Of a stretch of 64,000 nt of DNA, positions 29,001-62,245 are shown piece by piece. Numbering within the stretch: the first letter of the stretch is position 1; each line of letters starts with the position of its first letter. The stretch covers positions 5,598,757 to 5,662,756 of the forward strand of contig CAJINV010000001.1 of NCBI GenBank assembly GCA_905178155.1, read 5' to 3'. The translations under genes and the position numbers were made by a program. The notes beneath the pieces were generated by a model that saw only the letters and a list, made by a program, of their open reading frames with translations, did not search any database and was not told the origin of the DNA. This stretch comes from Amoebophrya sp. A120 (lineage: Eukaryota; Protista; Dinoflagellata).

Positions 29001-32000
29001 TCCCCGTTCGAAGGCGAGGGCGGCTGGAAGCAATACTTCCTCCCTCCGATCTCTCCCACCTGTTGCGCGGCGCAGTTGTTCTTCCCTCCGACTACTTGGA
29101 CCGAGGAGGGACGGCAATCGCCGAAAAGCCGCCGGTAACCTGCATCCTCGACAATTGAGTAGTATCCTGTGTAAAAACGTCCCCATCCCATAGTCAAGTT
29201 GCGAACAACTCTGCAACACAAATCCAGAAGTTTTGGAAGCCATGCATGAAAAGTTCGTCCTTGTAGTGGAGTGCAGGTTAGCAAGAGCAGTCGCATCACA
29301 AACCCAATTCCTTATCCTGTTTACAGCATTACAAATGCCAAAACACGATTGGCAATTCCCTTCATGTCGATGCGCATTACAAATGTTCCTGTCATTGCAA
29401 ACCTGCATGGCAACAATTATGGGGTGGGGACGTTTTTACATAGGATAAGTAGTGCAACCGATTTACCGGGGTGCGATCGATCAGAAGCTCGCCAGAGAGC
29501 ACATCGACGTCCGCGGTCCGCCGCGTCGATAAACCCCCCGGCCCCGCTTCGACTGTAAGCCTGGCCCGGTACCAGTTGCAGCCACCGTCGCTGTTAGTTT
29601 TTTGTTTTTGCCCCTTCTCTTTCCCGCTTTGCTTCAATGCAAGCGCCAGACCTTGATGCTTCCACGCCAAGTCTTCGTCCCAACAGTCCTGCTGTGTATA
29701 CGCGCGCAGAAATTCGGTGAGCGCGGAATCTTTCAGCGCTGGGGCTTCCAGAAACTCTTTAGTCAAGTCGTAGGCAGGCTGACTGCCGAGGGCTTCGTGC
29801 ACGGCTTTTGTCATTCCCTGCGCTCGCACTTCCGCGAAAAACAACATCGTAGATGACCATGAGCCTTGCTCATCATGCTTCGCCTGGTTGTCTGCAAGCG
29901 TTGCACGGATGTAAAACCATGCCGCCGCATCGGAAAGCTTGGGCAGCTCTATGTCTTCGATCGGAATCACGCCGCTGTTCGGTCCGGGTCGTAGGAGCCG
30001 GTCGTCGTCTGCAAAAGTCAGGGACGCCGCTACGCAGATCCCCGAGAGCCGGGCCGAGGCAGAGTCGCCCTTGCTACCACGCGTGCGCTTCAGCTGGTCG
30101 ATCCAGCGAAGTGCCTGTGTGCGGGCCATGCGCAGAAGGCCCACCGCTGCTTCGCATTTCGGGCAGTGTTCAAACACAAAAACCCCGATCAGGACCGCTA
30201 TGGTGAGTTCCGTCACTCTGTCCCAGGCATCCCAGTTTTGCGTCAGAATGTCCCGGGCGTGCTTGCACAAATCTTCCGAAAGAGAAGAACCGAGGTCGGC
30301 CAGCGCAGCCGCCGAACTTCGCATCCAGCGTCGCATGCCCATATCAGAAATATCCAGAAGATTCTCGTCGTCGTCGGCAGCACCAGCAGCAGCGCCGAAT
30401 AGGTCATCTTCTTCATGATCCTCACTGCGCGTCAGTGGAGGCCCGGTTTGCCAAAGGACTCCCAAAACCAGCCGGCCCACGTCTTCATGGTTCAAACTGT
30501 TTAGACCCCCGGTTAAGAGCTTAGCGAGTCGGAACAGCTGCAGGGTCGGCCCAGCAGCTCGCAGTAGTCCTAGTTGTTCTGCTGCTCTGGCGACCAGCGA
30601 ATGGCCCCCGCTTTTGATCTTCGCGTAGACAGCATTCTCGCAATGCCCGAAGCCTGTGAAGTCTTGCAGTACCTGATGCCGCGGATCCACCAGGCTTAGG
30701 CGAAGCCACTCGATCACCTTGATAACCCAGCTTGACCGCTGCCCCCTCAGCAGCCGGCCGCCTTTACAGCCGCCGTCCTTTTTGCCCTTATCGCGGGCCG
30801 TTTCATACGGGTTAGTATGCTCTTCAGAATCAAGCACCTCAGCCAGGAGGTTGTGCTGGTTGTTTCTGATTATACACGAATTCTCATCAAGCGAAGCAAC
30901 TTGCTCGTACTTCGTTTTCCCAGATTTCGCGACGAGTTCCGGTCGCAACATTCGAGAGCAAAGCCGAACCCTGCGCCCCGAAGTCAGGATCTTATCGGTG
31001 TCCCTGTCGCTCGCTTCCCCAAGGGCCTTCATCAGGGGCTCGAACTCGTGCCACTTGAACATGTGGTCGTCTTCGTATGGCTGCGAAACGGCACTCTCGT
31101 CGTCGGCCCCGAGAAACTCGCCGAAGTCGATCCATGCTTCCTCCTGTGCAATGAGACGCTCTGACATGAGGAGGTGGAACAAGAGGTAGGTTTGGTCATT
31201 ATCCGACTCTGGCAACAGTTTTCGGTATCTCGAGATTTTGATCATGGCGATCTTCCTCCTGGCCTGGCACGCCTCGCACCTTTCGCCGATATACCTTCTG
31301 CCGCTCTTCTTGCAGGCACAGTCACTCCCGCGGTTGTTAAGCGTAAACTCCTCGATTTGCTCCTCCAGCGACTCGCATTCCTCGTGCTTTTCTCGCCAGT
31401 CTTCGCGCTTCTTCTCTTGGTTCTCGCGACATTTCGCATTGATTTGCGCCTTCTGCGTGTCGATTAATTCCTTCATCTTCTTGTCCTTCGCAAGTGCCAG
31501 CGCCAAGAACTTCGAATGCGGCCAATTCACGGTCTCCAGTTTCGATTTCGAATGCTTCGCTCTCGTTTTCCTGCTCTTCATGTACCCCTGGTTTTTTTTT
31601 CGGCCCATCGATGTACTTTTCTACTTCTGCATCAAAGTCGAAGCCTCTGAAAAAGAAGGGACTAGAAAAAGCTAACCAAAGCGAAACCAAGCAGAGCCGA
31701 AATTTCAAAAAATGGTCACTGCTGTCCTTACCTCGAGGGAACTGAGCTGCTGCTTGTGCTTCGCTTCAGGCAAAAACAAAAGTGACAACAAGTGCGTGAA
31801 GTCGTATCCCAGAAAGTTTCCCAAAGCCGGGTGCTTCTGGCATGCCTCCCGATCCAAAAGCAGGCAACCTGTCAGGCCGGTCAAAATGACAACCGAAATT
31901 CCACGGAGGTCCCCGCGCAGTCCGGTCCCTGTGTTTCGCGTCGTGACCCGCGCGGCTGATGTCCCGTCGGAGAGGCCGAAAAACAGCTGCCTGGCGAGAC

Positions 32001-55470: not shown

Positions 55471-58310
55471 CTACGAACTTGTTGGTGCTGGCCTGCCCAC
55501 AATTCCGATACCGCCGGCCGCGTAGTCGCCGGTGGGCTTCGTGTCTTCTGTGGCGTGAAACTGGTACTTCGGGGCTTTTGGGGGACGCGGCTCCTTTGAG
55601 GGCTGTTGCTGACCAAGTGCGGAGGTCTTGCTGTGCAACGCGGAATCTTTGCTATCGATGTTCGCCACGACACTGTCTGCCCGCACTTGCACTACTCCCT
55701 CCTTGCTGCTAGACGAATTGTAGGAAGCAAATTCTTTGCTGTCCGGTGCGGAGTTGTTGCTTCGCACTGTGTCCTTGCTGTTTACCGGGGAAATTCCTTC
55801 GATTGGCTGCAGAGCATTGTTAACATTTTGAAAATCGGTCGGAAGCGACGTTGACCGCTCGGGCGACATCCCCTGCTGCTGCACCCAGCGTGGCTCCCGT
55901 GAAAAGCACCGAAGTAAACTCCCGAAAATTTGTCCGCCCACATCCAGCTCTGGTTCGTGCTTCAACTTGTAGTTAGCACCGTTCTGCACACTCCACTGCA
56001 TCTTGTCCTTGTCATTCGCAGAGGAATTGTTCGTGGTGCTGACCGCTGGCAGAGTCACAGCACCGTTTGCCGGGGGCGCCGCTGAAGATCCGGAGCTTGG
56101 CGTCTCCGGTGGTCTCTTTGCCGTCGAACTTGCACTTGTAGAGGCAGGATCCGCTTTTTTTGGGTCCGTCACTGCGGAAAAAGCGTTCGCTTTGAACTCT
56201 CGAACCTCAGCGGCAGCTGCTGCAAATTTGCCGTCGTTTGCTTGTTGCGGGTCACCACTGGAATCTTCAGGCTGGACAGGTTGTACCTGCGGTGTTCATA
56301 ATTTTTGGTAGGGTGTCCAATTCCCTACTCGTTTTCCTTGATTTTAATGGCGAGGAAACATGCAAATACGCACATCACCAAATAAGCATCGGCAAAAGAC
56401 TACTATATCACACCTGTCCATCTTCGTCTTCCTCACTGGCTGTGGTCGTACTAGATGCGGGCCCCGGAGGACCTGGCCCGGGCTCCTTGGCGCTCAGCAG
56501 CCGATCCCGTGTCGTTCTCGTTTGTGCGGTTGGGTAGGAAGCGCTTCTACTTGACGGCGACCCCGGCAGCTGATACTCGAAGCTCGCAGCCGGCCGTTGG
56601 TGCGGGTTCTCAGGGGCGGCAGTCGTGCCTGCAGTGGGAGCGGGGGTCGACCCTAGATCCAGACCGCCCGGCCCGTCCGGCGGATGCTGTTTAAGTTCCT
56701 TGGCCGGCGGTGCCGACGTGGAAGAGGTGGAAGGAGTTGCCCCTGTGGCCGAAGATGTGGAGGAATCTGCAGTTGCAGATGGCTTCGCTGCAGGTGCTGC
56801 CTTCGCAGGTGGGGGCGTTGGTAAGAAGGGGCCCGGAGTTTGCGATGCTGGTTTTGGCATACTCGGAGGCTGTGGCACGTGCACAGGCGCTGGGGCTTGT
56901 GGGTGTTGTTCCTGCGATTTTGTTTTTCGACTCGTGACGGCCACTGAAGCGCACTCTTCACTATAGCTGACTAGCTCCAACGACAACGAAAACGAGGAGA
57001 AGGAGAACGAAATCGAGGAAAACTATACTGCTGGCTTCTCTGGCGCAGCTGGCTCTTGCTTTGCATCAGATTCCTCGCTGCTCGAGGTTCTTTGCTCTTG
57101 CTCCGACTGTCGCAAAAACGTTTGCCCAATCATTGACCCGTTCGGCGTTGACCCGTTCGGCGTCCGGTCCTGTTTGCAAGATCGCGTAGTGGCTGTTTGG
57201 ATAGAAATCGAAAACAGCGCATCTCAAAAAACCAACATCATCTCGTCCACATGTCAGCGTCAAACAGGCTAGTTAGTATGAAAGCCACAACAACGACCAT
57301 CATACCTCCGCAATGACGATGTGATTCGGATTTATCCTTCGCACTGGCGACATCCCACCCTCCGACTCCGACTCGTTTATGGATCCGTTGCTGAGCGCTC
57401 GCTTTCGTGCCAGTTTCTGTGGATCGGGAATGCGATGCAACAATCCGGTGCCAAACTCGCACCCGAGAATCCCGCGGCCGCCCCAGGCGTCGCTGGGCAC
57501 GATGGGGACAACGCGGGTATCGTCAGATAACACGTTGTACACATACATGGAAACGCACTTTCCCTTAAACCTCTGGACCAATTCCACCAGGTCATCCAAG
57601 TCGCGGAACAACGTGCCTTCGGCGCCGAGAAGAAAATCCTCGTTGCTGTGAATGTTGGTCGTTCATCGGTCCAAGACTATCCATGGTTTGGAAAAAATCG
57701 CGAACTTCTAGCACAAAAAAAAGCTCTGAACACGGCACCAGCAAAACTATAGATACAGTTGTATAATACGGTGTCACGCCGGCCATTTCCGCGGGCGAGT
57801 TTTCGAACACGTTCGTGACCCTGATATCGCGGTACTCGTGACTGTCGTAGGCATCGAACCTTATCGTTGCTCCGAGAAGCCCCTTTCCGCCCCATTCTTT
57901 CGGTGTCAGCTTGACATGGCGTAGTTTCGTGGTTTTCGTGCTGAACACCGTCAGATTTGTTTCTGTGTTCTTCCGCTGCCGAATCGAGCCGAAGAACCCT
58001 GTGAAGTGATCATGTGTCTTATGCAACACAGCGTCGATGCAAAATTGATATTTTCAGATTTTCACTTTCATCGAAAACCTAAATTTTTCTTTTGAACATA
58101 GACGAGTAGCTGTGTCACAAGCCGTATCTGCCAGATACTTTGCTGATCGCCGTCAACCGGCCTTCCCTCTACCCCGACGATATAGTCAAAGTAGATCTGC
58201 AAGCCGGCTTCGTGTGCCGGCGACCCCTTGCACAGGTTAAACACCCGGTATCCAAGTCCCTTCTGCTGGTCGGGGTCGTTGCTGTCTTCAGAGGACTCAA
58301 CGCCTCCCAT
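55471..58310 (-). CDS. GRASP: Golgi reassembly-stacking protein (GRASP55/65 family): tandem PDZ-like domains plus a long Ser/Pro-rich tail, multi-exon
   Basis: MGG N-terminus (myristoylation-type), GYRVFNL..SPAHEAGL..YFDYIV, WGGKGLLGATIRF, WGGRGILGCEFGTGLLHRIP. GT-AG introns 57999-58138 and 57646-57769. Tail exons (~57170-57030, ~56980-56414, ~56286-55471) are less certain. Confidence 0.88.
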
Positions 58311-58995
58311 GGTGACGGAATAAACTGAAGAACTTTGTTGCGTTGCTTAACCAAGGACCAACTTGCCGCTCACCTGCTCCTGCAGCGAGGGGACAATAAC
58401 GAAGCCATGCTGGTGTTTGTAGTTGGGCTCTTTGTGTCGTAAACCGTCCAACGCCTCTTGAATACCCCCGTAGCACTAGAGTCAAGTGAAGAAGAAAGGT
58501 AGAAGCGGAAACGTTTGTTTGTCCGTAGTATCGACGCAATCGGGAAACTTGAAGTTGAATCTTTTTGTACTTACATTTCCAACAGAAGTCACTCAACAGT
58601 TCAAGAACTTGTTTCACAGGATAAGATCCTCCGTGTGACCACGACGGGCGAACATGATAGCGATACAGACCGAGCACTGCAGTAGTTGCTTAGCAGCGGT
58701 TGCAGCGAACACAGGCAGAAACCGGTATACTAAACTTCTGCAGCAGAGCTGCCGACGTCTTCACACGAAATGCTGATCTTCCTTCGTCTAGTTTGTACGA
58801 AGATGATGTGATACACTTTTTACACACGACAACTGTGACAGCGCGTGTAAATAAACCACTGACTTTCATTTAATCATGAATCGTGAAATCTTGTTCACTG
58901 TCGCTTTATCTGATCGTAGTACCTGATCTGCCTTATTCAACAAGTGAAACAGCATAAATTTTGAAAAAGTATCCGCCCTCTGCTCTTCAAAAACC

Positions 58996-61569
58996 TTACG
59001 ACAGCGTCATACTTCCTTCTTCGGGCGGGTGCACGGTTTCGCACACCCGCATCAATCGCTTGAAGACCTGCAAGTACCTTCTCGACTCCTCGTTGTTCAG
59101 CATGCCGCGGAACTTCAGGTCCACCTTGTGTGCGTCGAAGGTCTCGACGCGCTGGTAGGTCGCCCCGCGCGGTCGTTTGTAAATACGCGTTCTCCCGACC
59201 GTGGCGTTCGCGGCGTTCCCGATCACCAACTCGACGTACCGCGCCGTGGCTTCGCGGTACAGCTTCTGGTCGCAAAGCGTGACCATCTTGTCCAACAAAT
59301 CCACCGACTCGTTTTCCTCCACGCCCAGCTCCGTTTCTTTCTTCCGCTTGTCCCGGTACGCGGTCGAGGTGAACAGCTCCTGCTTCGCCCACTCCTTCAA
59401 CTTTTTCAGCAGCGGTTGGATGTCCTTCCGACTCTGCTCGAAGATCGCGGTCTGCAACTTCCCCTCCTGCGACTCCTTCTCGTCCTGGGGGCGGGCGAGC
59501 AAATTTTCCGCCCAAATCTGCCACATCTTCTTGATCCACTTGCGCACCCGGTACTCCTTCGAGTTCTTCCAGGTTTGCTTCACGTCCGACGGGTCCACGT
59601 ACTCCCCGGTTGCTGCGTCCTTTTTTTCGTCCTCCACCGACTGGACCGGGAGGTACGGCCGCGCGTTCCACTTGTTTGGGTCGTTGGAGTCCGCGGACCG
59701 GATGGTTTTCATGGCCTCCTCGTGCAACGCGCGGATCGCCGGGTTCGCCGCGTCCTCCTCGTCCTGCTTCAAACCCGCGTCCACGTCCTGCTTTCCCTTG
59801 ATCGCGCGCTTCAAATCCAGGATCTTTTTGTCGCGTTCCCGCAATTTTCCCTCTTCCTGTTCGCGGTGGATCACGTTCCCGATGTGCGCGCCGCCGGACA
59901 GGATGCGGCCGCCGCTGTACCACTCCCCGATCTCCCGTTTTTTGCCGTCCACCTTCCCGCGCTCCTGCTCAATCTCCTCCGGCTTCACATCCCCGTCCAA
60001 GACCGCCTTCAGCCCCTTCAGCGGGTTCTTCTGCAGTTCGAGAGATGTGACGTACGCGTCCTTCTCATCCACCTTCTGGTCCGCCTCATCGGACGAACTC
60101 GTGTCGTCTGACAGCTCGGTTTTCGGGTTCAGCGCCGCGTCGTCTTCGGCGTCGAGTAGATCGTGCACAGACGCGGTGCCACCACCGCCCGCTGTCGCCT
60201 TTCCGGACAAAGACTTCCGCTTCTTGTCCAAGGTCGCAAACTTCGCGGCCGCGTCCTCGTCGTCCTTCAGAGTCAAATCGTTGTCGTCGTCCATCACGGA
60301 CCGCAACACCCGCTGGAAGAAGTTCGCCTGGCCCGAGGACCGCTCTTCGCCTTGCGCCGCGATGTCGCGCTGCAGGAGCTGCAACCGACGCAGCCGATCC
60401 TTGTCCGACTCGCCGAAAAGGGTGACCGGCTGGTGCAGTTTCCGCAACTTCGCCTTAATTTCCGCGGGGGAGAGCAAGTCGTTCTTCGCCGCGCCCCCGA
60501 CAGACAAGAGTTTCAGACTGACCGCGCCGACCTGCATGGTGGGCTCCGCGCCGTCCTCCACCTGCAGGTAACTGTGCAGCAGCTTGTTGCTGTTCGTGAT
60601 GTTCTTCGCTATGCGGGAGGACGCACTGGCGGCGGTGGACTTGGACTCCGCGACTTTTGTCTGAATCGGATCCGCCGCGACATTGATGTTCGGTAAAGCC
60701 GCGCCCCCGCCCCCGACGTTCCCGGCTTTGCCGAGAAGAAATTTTGCCGTGAAGGAGTTCACGTCGAAGGCGCTGTCGGAAGTAGAAGTCGAGGTTGATG
60801 AATCAGCGACTGCGACAACCGCGCCAGCATGCTTGTTGGACGCGTTGTTCTCACTGTCGTCGTCAGGAAGAAGCTTTTCCTTCGTCGCTGTGGACGAACT
60901 GCCGTCGGCGGGGATGAGCTTTGTGTCAGAAAGCTGGACCGGTTTGTCTTTTTTACTGGCGCCTGATGCTGCCGCTATTGATGTGGACGGGGTATTCATC
61001 TTTGCGTCGTTTTTAATTGCGAGCCCTGCTGCTCCGGCAGAAGCTTTATTATCCTCCAGTGCAGGAACAACTGCAGCGGTAGTTTTAATATTCTTCGACT
61101 TCTTCCCGTCCAGATCGTCCTCGAAGGATCGAAACCCCTCGGTTTGCTCGCCGCCTTGTGCCGCCAACATGCGCTGGCGCTCCTCCTCCTGGCGCCGCAG
61201 TTGCGCAATCCGCTCGGCGTCTTCCAACATTTCCTTGGTCACGGGGCCGGTTTTGGTCGGGAAGTACTCGGTGTACAGTTTTGTTAGCGCCTCTGCCTCC
61301 TTGCCCTCCTTCTCGTTCTCCTTTTCGATCCGCTTCTCAATCTTCTCCTGCTCCTCCGCCGCGGCCACCTCGCCGACGTTTTCCTGTTTGGTGAACACCG
61401 GCGGTGCGGCGGCCAGCTTCCCCTTCAACGTGCTCTTGTCCGGCCGGCCCTCGTTCATTTTCGCTTTCTTCTCCTTCATCACGGCTTTTAGGTCGAACAT
61501 GCCGGGTAATTTCTTCTTGTCGCCACCCCGACCGGGGTTCTTGTCGCCGCCCCCGCCGAAAGATCTCAT
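58996..61569 (-). CDS. PRP18: Pre-mRNA splicing factor Prp18 homolog, 857 aa, long low-complexity N-terminus, divergent conserved loop
   Basis: PRP4-like motif EIKAKLRKLHQPVTLFGESDKDRLRRL. Prp18 domain: QSRKDIQPLLKKLK, YREATARYVELVIGNA, LNNEESRRYLQVFKRLMRVCETVHP. Confidence 0.85.
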   Translation of the reverse strand: MRSFGGGGDKNPGRGGDKKKLPGMFDLKAVMKEKKAKMNEGRPDKSTLKGKLAAAPPVFTKQENVGEVAAAEEQEKIEKRIEKENEKEGKEAEALTKLYTEYFPTKTGPVTKEMLEDAERIAQLRRQEEERQRMLAAQGGEQTEGFRSFEDDLDGKKSKNIKTTAAVVPALEDNKASAGAAGLAIKNDAKMNTPSTSIAAASGASKKDKPVQLSDTKLIPADGSSSTATKEKLLPDDDSENNASNKHAGAVVAVADSSTSTSTSDSAFDVNSFTAKFLLGKAGNVGGGGAALPNINVAADPIQTKVAESKSTAASASSRIAKNITNSNKLLHSYLQVEDGAEPTMQVGAVSLKLLSVGGAAKNDLLSPAEIKAKLRKLHQPVTLFGESDKDRLRRLQLLQRDIAAQGEERSSGQANFFQRVLRSVMDDDNDLTLKDDEDAAAKFATLDKKRKSLSGKATAGGGGTASVHDLLDAEDDAALNPKTELSDDTSSSDEADQKVDEKDAYVTSLELQKNPLKGLKAVLDGDVKPEEIEQERGKVDGKKREIGEWYSGGRILSGGAHIGNVIHREQEEGKLRERDKKILDLKRAIKGKQDVDAGLKQDEEDAANPAIRALHEEAMKTIRSADSNDPNKWNARPYLPVQSVEDEKKDAATGEYVDPSDVKQTWKNSKEYRVRKWIKKMWQIWAENLLARPQDEKESQEGKLQTAIFEQSRKDIQPLLKKLKEWAKQELFTSTAYRDKRKKETELGVEENESVDLLDKMVTLCDQKLYREATARYVELVIGNAANATVGRTRIYKRPRGATYQRVETFDAHKVDLKFRGMLNNEESRRYLQVFKRLMRVCETVHPPEEGSMTLS

Positions 61570-62245
61570 GCTGGGTGGATTCGTGGATTTCTATGCTTAC
61601 TTCTCGTAGGGCTGATAGGTGAAACTTTTTGCTTGGTGGAAGTGGAGCTACAGTTACTGCAATGTTGCTACATTTTCATCGACAGAGCCGGCAATTGGAA
61701 TCAAGTCGTTATTCTACTCGCTAGATATCAAACAGCATGCTCCACTGATTTCCTCTTTGATACTACATAAAGTTGCTGAGTGACACTGACACTGTCATTC
61801 CTTGCGGTCGGATGAATCAAGGTACATTGTGAAGAAAAATCAAAATCAACCATGACAAAACATGATCCGCGTGGGAAAGCCATCGTTGATCTGCCGGATC
61901 TCAACAATTTTTTGACTCATGCTTTTGAACGAGCAGAGCGAAGCCGGATTAGCACCATTTCGAGATCTTTAGAAGCAACATCTAGCACAAAACAGAAAAA
62001 GTTAAACTAGAGGATCTGAAAAACGGGAAAGGTCAGTAGAAGTTCACAGCTTTTTGAGATCGCCGGGAACACGTGCCTGCTGAGCAAGTGCTTATAATTC
62101 ATTGCAACTTTCTTGTGGACAAGCAGTGGCGCTGCAGTTTTTCATACGAAAAAAAATTCGGGCACGGGAGATCCATATTTTTGCGCGCATACTTTACAAA
62201 ACGCCCATCGGGTTCAATCATCGGGGGATCTTCTCCATGACCCGT

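Follow-up and report, generated by a model that had tools for sequence, protein, structure and literature searches.

A divergent, expressed Prp18 paralog with a rebuilt conserved-region loop in Amoebophrya sp. A120

How the tens of thousands of non-GT-AG introns of Amoebophrya are removed is an open question, and one gene in a 64,000-nucleotide stretch of the Amoebophrya sp. A120 genome (contig CAJINV010000001.1, positions 5,598,757 to 5,662,756; this whole stretch is referred to as the window, and features are given in its coordinates unless a contig is named) is a candidate for a part in the answer. The gene, here called div1, encodes a conserved and expressed natural paralog of the second-step splicing factor Prp18, from which the loop tied by yeast genetics to 3' splice-site fidelity is missing. 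What kind of protein is it, and could it bear on the splicing of these introns? An earlier reading made from the letters alone (hereafter the sequence-only reading) had proposed a remodelled or second-copy second-step factor that lets the spliceosome handle non-AG introner introns. The analyses described herein indicated that div1 is probably a neofunctionalised, expressed Prp18 paralog, most likely docked on the spliceosome via its conserved scaffold and presenting a new basic loop at the place of the fidelity loop. The remodelled second copy was thus recovered, with its scaffold kept and its conserved-region loop rebuilt; the proposed link to introners fared less well. The gene and the domains on which its assignment is based are the following.

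58996..61569, minus strand: div1, the divergent Prp18 paralog of Amoebophrya sp. A120, an intronless open reading frame of 857 amino acids (aa) with the stop codon within the span
60379..60459, minus strand: PRP4-like SFM motif, aa 371-397 (Pfam PF08799, 43.3 bits)
59026..59541, minus strand: Prp18 domain, a helical bundle, matched by PF02840 in two stretches (59392-59541 and 59026-59307)
~59320..59385, minus strand: extra segment of ~22 aa after the LLKKLK helix, seen in MAFFT and hhalign alignments

The div1 protein was found as an identical 857-aa entry in both NCBI and EukProt. An N-terminal PRP4-like SFM motif is a feature of non-yeast PRPF18, and div1 was shown to keep both the N-terminal Prp18-like start and this motif, which was detected again in a scan of the organism's own genome (C1:5659135-5659215, 48.6 bits). 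In the Pfam protein scan, the Prp18 domain of div1 exceeded the cut-off of 32.5 bits with a score of 57, as compared with 151 and 140 bits for the canonical copies of the same genome, and its match fell into two parts, since both a lineage-specific insertion and the rebuilt loop interrupt the domain. The segment after the LLKKLK helix has no counterpart in canonical Prp18 and is far longer in the gene model of strain A25 described below. A profile-profile comparison by hhalign of the three known div1 proteins with 23 canonical Prp18 proteins (the two canonical copies of A120 itself, proteins from named apicomplexans, and unnamed proteins of transcriptome or metagenome origin) gave a probability of 99.6%.

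The predicted structure was in good agreement with this assignment. In an AlphaFold2 model of aa 640-857, the helices were predicted with a predicted local distance difference test score (pLDDT) above 90, and upon VIA-align rescoring against PDB the top six hits were all yeast Prp18 chains (Z 10.7-11.7), the next hit scoring 6.4; the modelled domain thus adopts the five-helix Prp18 fold. Foldseek alone returned no significant match for this model, but VIA-align on the same candidates set Prp18 clearly apart. Single-sequence PDB searches with the whole div1 protein and with the in-frame domain reached no Prp18 chain, and a search of the ESM Atlas brought back only generic Prp18 clusters. By homology, div1 is a member of the Prp18 domain family, from whose canonical orthologs it is excluded by the absence of the defining loop. 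The replacement of that loop is laid out as follows.

59101..59208, minus strand: rebuilt loop, aa 788-823, from IGNAA to helix 5 (LNNEE...), delimited in alignments
59143..59196, minus strand: core of the new loop, GRTRIYKRPRGATYQRVE, aa 792-809, delimited in three-way alignments

After I783-G-N-A-A787, div1 continues with NATVGRTRIYKRPRGATYQRVETFDAHKVDLKFRGM (aa 788-823) and then with LNNEESRRYLQVFKRLM; the string that the sequence-only reading had reported to follow IGNA lies inside 59080-59240 exactly as described. That reading had also described the canonical loop as near-invariant, and in our set all ten specified residues of WPxGVTxVGIHxR were indeed invariant in 23/23 canonical Prp18 proteins. 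This loop, which stands between helices 4 and 5, is absent from div1. In the profile-profile alignment, its ten central residues, GVTSVGIHER, were deleted; in yeast, these are G196-R205, at the centre of a conserved region of 25 residues, S187-I211 (yeast numbering was taken from the alignment and cross-checked against the mutants in PMC10711555). The flanking GRxxI[Y/F] was kept, canonical AGRSKIF reading VGRTRIY here, and two insertions were recognized, one of 11 residues (RPRGATYQRVE) and one of 8 residues ahead of helix 5. As aligned, the change is a deletion plus insertions around a surviving remnant and no wholesale swap. At the positions of yeast W193-P194, A120 has N-A, AT5 has N-G and A25 has W-G. 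The outcome is a loop of 36 aa with 9 K/R and 3 D/E, against 27 aa with 3 K/R and 1 D/E in the canonical paralog. A frameshift origin of the new loop was considered and found no support, none of the other reading frames through the loop DNA of the canonical paralogs resembling it; nucleotide similarity between the loop DNA of div1 and that of the canonical paralogs ends after IGNAA.

Is div1 the only Prp18 of this organism? The sequence-only reading had called for a search for a canonical paralog, and a six-frame PF02840 scan of the whole A120 genome revealed four Prp18-domain loci, two with a fully canonical loop and two divergent, div1 and div2. The three loci other than div1 are listed below.

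C8:1123057: canon1, GSA120T00006464001 (P0003), 155 bits in the genome scan, loop VGNAAWPVGVTSVGIHER
C1:462531-462893 (L007:1474-3468), minus strand: canon2, GSA120T00010818001, 665 aa, 145 bits in the genome scan, loop IGNAAWPLGVTSVGIHER
C3:6215229-6215504 (L003:1492-2616), minus strand: div2, GSA120T00017412001, 375 aa, 40 bits in the genome scan, loop IGHTKWHHDMAHGEARHNKG

The translated open reading frames of canon2 and div2, and the database protein P0003 for canon1, are identical to published A120 gene models. Of the canonical pair, canon2 carries the SFM motif and the canonical loop on a long branch (3.06). As a protein, div2 scored 48 bits for the Prp18 domain, so that it resembles div1 in combining a domain above the Pfam cut-off with a non-canonical loop; unlike div1, however, it is devoid of the SFM motif, its His-rich loop is of about canonical length, and its extremely long branch (10 changes per column) showed no specific kinship to div1 in the tree. 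The spliceosome table of the A120 genome paper lists a single PRPF18 per strain, the A120 entry being canon1 (PMC7789003); the expansion of Prp18 and its divergent copies are absent from that description. Meanwhile, Slu7 (PF11708) and Prp8 domain IV (PF12134) gave one match each in A120, and among the three second-step proteins checked (Prp18, Slu7 and Prp8), Prp18 alone gave more than one. Four Prp18 genes against one match each for the other two is unusual in itself, and since each of these partners gave a single match, any Prp18 paralog must share them. Searches of the accessible literature library returned no relevant work on Prp18 in connection with non-canonical introns or on dinoflagellate Prp18 paralogs.

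The relationship of div1 to the canonical copies was resolved by a maximum-likelihood tree of the domain, in which loop columns were included. The div1 protein and two orthologs from other strains formed a clade with 100/100 support, and its sister group, at 99/99 support, comprised canon1 and an environmental relative (P0004). In addition, the C-terminal tail of div1 is near identical to that of the canonical Amoebophrya copy (QVFKRLMRVCETVHPPE vs QVFKRLMKQCQTTNPPD), most visibly in QVFKRLM..C.T..PP. On this tree placement and tail similarity, div1 arose by lineage-specific duplication from the ordinary Prp18 of Amoebophrya and is a paralog, not the canonical ortholog. The stem branch of the div1 clade spans 2.19 changes per column and its tips 0.2-0.4; in the tree, therefore, div1 evolved fast after the duplication and more slowly later. 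The two orthologs are as follows.

Strain A25: GSA25T00004339001 (P0002), a gene model of 634 aa
Strain AT5.2 (also given as AT5): g14032.t1 (P0040), 888 aa, with SFM and Prp18 domains

Neither the N-terminal region nor the SFM motif is present in the A25 model, whose Prp18 domain is enlarged by more than 100 low-complexity residues; these oddities may be real, or they may reflect a mis-modelled start together with unremoved non-canonical introns. Within the div1 tree, AT5 groups with A120, with weak support (86/75). Over the whole protein, A120 and AT5 share 43% identity. In windows of 40 residues, identity rose to 80% at aa 681-720 and aa 761-800 and to 68% at aa 801-840, and the core GRTRIYKRPRGAT[Y/W]QRVE was identical at 17/18 positions in A120, A25 and AT5. 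Amoebophrya is noted for low between-strain protein similarity (PMC7789003), and as the domain and the new loop stand out as the most conserved parts against this background, their conservation speaks for purifying selection acting on the new loop rather than for decay. Among JGI (Joint Genome Institute) metagenome contigs, neither the three-strain alignment nor a degenerate DNA pattern for GRTRIYKRPRGAT found relatives of div1, the collection and the patterns both being narrow; restriction of div1 to Amoebophrya is provisional, the ortholog search beyond the genus having been shallow.

The sequence-only reading had allowed that RNA might reveal a canonical loop spliced into the message. Transcription of the locus was assessed with run X1, which consists of assembled contigs and whose label as RNA is a guess.

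58781..61790, minus strand: taken as the div1 transcript with its untranslated regions, covered by one RNA-assembly contig of 3,010 nt in run X1

This contig had no joints and no differences from the genome. In the same run, the neighbouring gene at 57051-58213 (minus strand) showed three joints, skipping 136, 124 and 140 nt, with ends reading CT..AC on the plus strand, that is, GT..AG for a minus-strand gene; these spliced joints demonstrate that run X1 contains spliced RNA. The colinearity of the div1 contig thus indicates that the gene is transcribed as an intronless message into which no canonical loop is spliced, and that candidate was ruled out. Depth was 28.3 on the div1 contig vs 10.9 and 10.5 on the flanking genes, contigs giving no reliable expression levels, and fell to zero in the flanking bins 58576-58772 and 61925-62121.

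What such a protein might do is best approached by comparison with the known factor. Like canonical Prp18/PRPF18 (yeast Prp18p, PDB 1DVK, 6EXN and 9DTR; canon1), div1 possesses the SFM motif and the C-terminal Prp18 helical domain, together with the IGN start of the loop, GRxxI[Y/F] and the (D/N)E...KR residues of helix 5. In contrast, it is without the WPxGVTxVGIHxR tip, carries the 11- and 8-aa insertions and the extra segment after helix 2, and is much longer (857 aa), with low-complexity inserts. Within helix 5, the residues matching yeast E224, K234 and R235 were kept in 3/3 strains, and yeast D223 is matched by D in AT5 and A25 and by N in A120. The closest experimental counterpart is provided by the engineered yeast alleles prp18-deltaCR and prp18-deltaCRt, which likewise consist of a Prp18 scaffold deprived of its conserved loop tip, and which retain Slu7 binding while shifting 3' splice-site choice to non-YAG sites (PMC10711555). 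Unlike these alleles, div1 is a paralog that occurs naturally, side by side with canonical copies, and its loop has been replaced by a conserved basic sequence.

These features are best accommodated by the following course of events. The canonical Amoebophrya Prp18 was duplicated before A120, A25 and AT5 split; the div1 copy preserved its Prp18-like start and helical scaffold together with the SFM motif and helix-5 residues; and the tip of the conserved-region loop was lost, a longer and strongly basic loop under purifying selection taking over. From the kept scaffold we infer that div1 docks on the spliceosome, where it would compete with or replace the canonical paralogs, and we likewise infer any effect on 3' site choice: by confronting the region of the 3' splice site with a probe of another kind, div1 may act as an alternative or regulatory second-step factor, for which introner splicing would be only one possible role. 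We consider this reading of div1 likely on the whole, and several observations weigh against it. The rebuilt loop is modelled at low confidence by AlphaFold2 (pLDDT <50), and the KRPR that it contains is, by our own reading, also compatible with a simple nuclear-localisation motif. In helix 2, through which yeast Prp18 binds Slu7, the pair corresponding to yeast R151/R152 is K-E in A120 and A25 and K-Q in AT5; the K keeps a basic residue at the R151 position, and the E or Q at the R152 position might weaken Slu7 binding; canonical proteins also vary there, with R or K first and H, Q or K second. Expression of div1 rests on the assembled contigs of a run with a guessed RNA label, and the raw-read RNA runs X9-X11 (2026, same species label) placed zero reads on 5.9 kb holding three expressed genes, which makes them no test of div1; another strain as their source, or a predominance of host RNA in them, is the probable reason.

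Could the rebuilt loop, then, serve the non-canonical introns? In the yeast P complex, the conserved loop of Prp18 projects into the active site, close to the -3 and -4 positions of the 3' splice site, and loss of Prp18 activates non-YAG sites genome-wide, a loop-deletion allele being at least as strong as the null (PMC10711555). The yeast background invoked by the sequence-only reading is thus sound: deletion of the loop does favour non-YAG 3' splice sites (PMC10711555). So is its premise that introners are present in this genome. More than 60% of introns in A120 and A25 are non-canonical (PMC7789003), and the window contains an introner-like element.

29163-29447: introner-like element bounded by terminal inverted repeats of 30 nt that are 93% complementary and begin with TAT

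Terminal inverted repeats of this kind have been published for A120 introner families. In the A120 genome paper, no U1 small nuclear RNA was found (PMC7789003).

On this basis, the rebuilt loop would relax or re-target 3' splice-site recognition, allowing exon ligation at the non-AG ends of introner and other non-canonical introns. In favour of this idea, the effect of yeast loop deletion on non-YAG sites may be dominant (PMC10711555); the two strains with more than 60% non-canonical introns both carry div1 (PMC7789003), which is expressed as judged from the RNA contig; and, with one PRPF18 listed per strain, div1 was not considered in the genome paper. Nevertheless, the same rebuilt loop occurs in AT5.2, whose introns are reported to be 99.98% GT-AG (PMC7789003, PMC6482013); a later paper regards introners as limited to part of the genus (PMC12005148), and AT5 falls, with weak support, with A120 in the tree and not outside it. 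The link to introners is weakened accordingly, since the sequence-only reading had named the same divergence in relatives with only GT-AG introns as evidence against itself. Such a relative was found in AT5.2, albeit not a clean one, as the AT5 figure derives from Augustus predictions with limited transcript support and no unbiased RNA-seq survey. Furthermore, the non-canonical introns of Amoebophrya are unusual at both ends and bear hairpins and direct repeats (PMC7789003), features that a change confined to the 3' site would not account for, and two paralogs with the canonical loop persist in A120. Taken together, we regard it as unlikely that div1 serves the splicing of these introns in particular; the gene is no more than a reasonable candidate.

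A broader version of the same idea, to which we attach a quite low probability, is that Amoebophrya diversified Prp18 into four paralogs with different active-site loops about one Slu7 and one Prp8, those with rebuilt loops, div1 foremost, supplying a common spliceosome core with alternative reading heads for the 3' splice site; the massive spread of non-GT-AG introners would thereby have become tolerable. If so, AT5 would either harbour undetected non-canonical introns or represent a permissive state that preceded them.

Another explanation is tied to no single intron class. As a regulatory competitor, div1 would bind the single Slu7 and Prp8 without a fidelity loop and thereby modulate how efficiently the second step proceeds, which alternative 3' site is chosen or whether an intron is retained, for instance in the course of the infection cycle. 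The retention of scaffold and SFM motif alongside the loss of the loop tip would suit such a role, as would the single match each for Slu7 and Prp8 and the presence of div1 in AT5, a strain reported as GT-AG; moreover, yeast loop and helix-5 mutants stronger than the null hint at dominance (PMC10711555). A mere loss-of-function competitor, however, would need no new 18-residue core invariant at 17/18 positions in three strains, and we consider this explanation very doubtful.

That div1 is a decaying or non-splicing duplicate, its loop degenerate through lost splicing-factor constraint, is barely credible: the low Pfam score (57 bits vs 151 and 140), the failure of single-sequence search to match PDB and the long low-complexity inserts could be taken that way, but the 857-codon open reading frame is intact and transcribed, the branches within the div1 clade are short, and conservation across the three-strain orthologs is highest in the domain and the new loop (68-80% vs 43% overall), a pattern that largely refutes it.

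The value of div1 is that of a lead. As a Prp18 with a rebuilt loop, it is a concrete candidate for altered second-step chemistry, and even if it proves unrelated to introners, it allows the role of the conserved loop in Prp18 to be studied as a natural experiment.

Some minor features of the locus were also noted. The downstream neighbour (57051-58310, minus strand) is a homolog of the GRASP55/65 PDZ-like Golgi stacking proteins. Near the N-terminus of div1 and outside its known domains, at ~61420-61500 (aa ~24-50), the motif KAKMNEGRPDKSxLKGKLAA is common to A120 and AT5 and is absent from the shorter A25 model. Likewise outside the known domains, at ~59870-59920 (aa ~550-565), a second motif, WYSGxxxxSGGxxIG, is common to the A120 and AT5 orthologs, and it is discernible in the A25 ortholog as WYTG....SGGSNIG.

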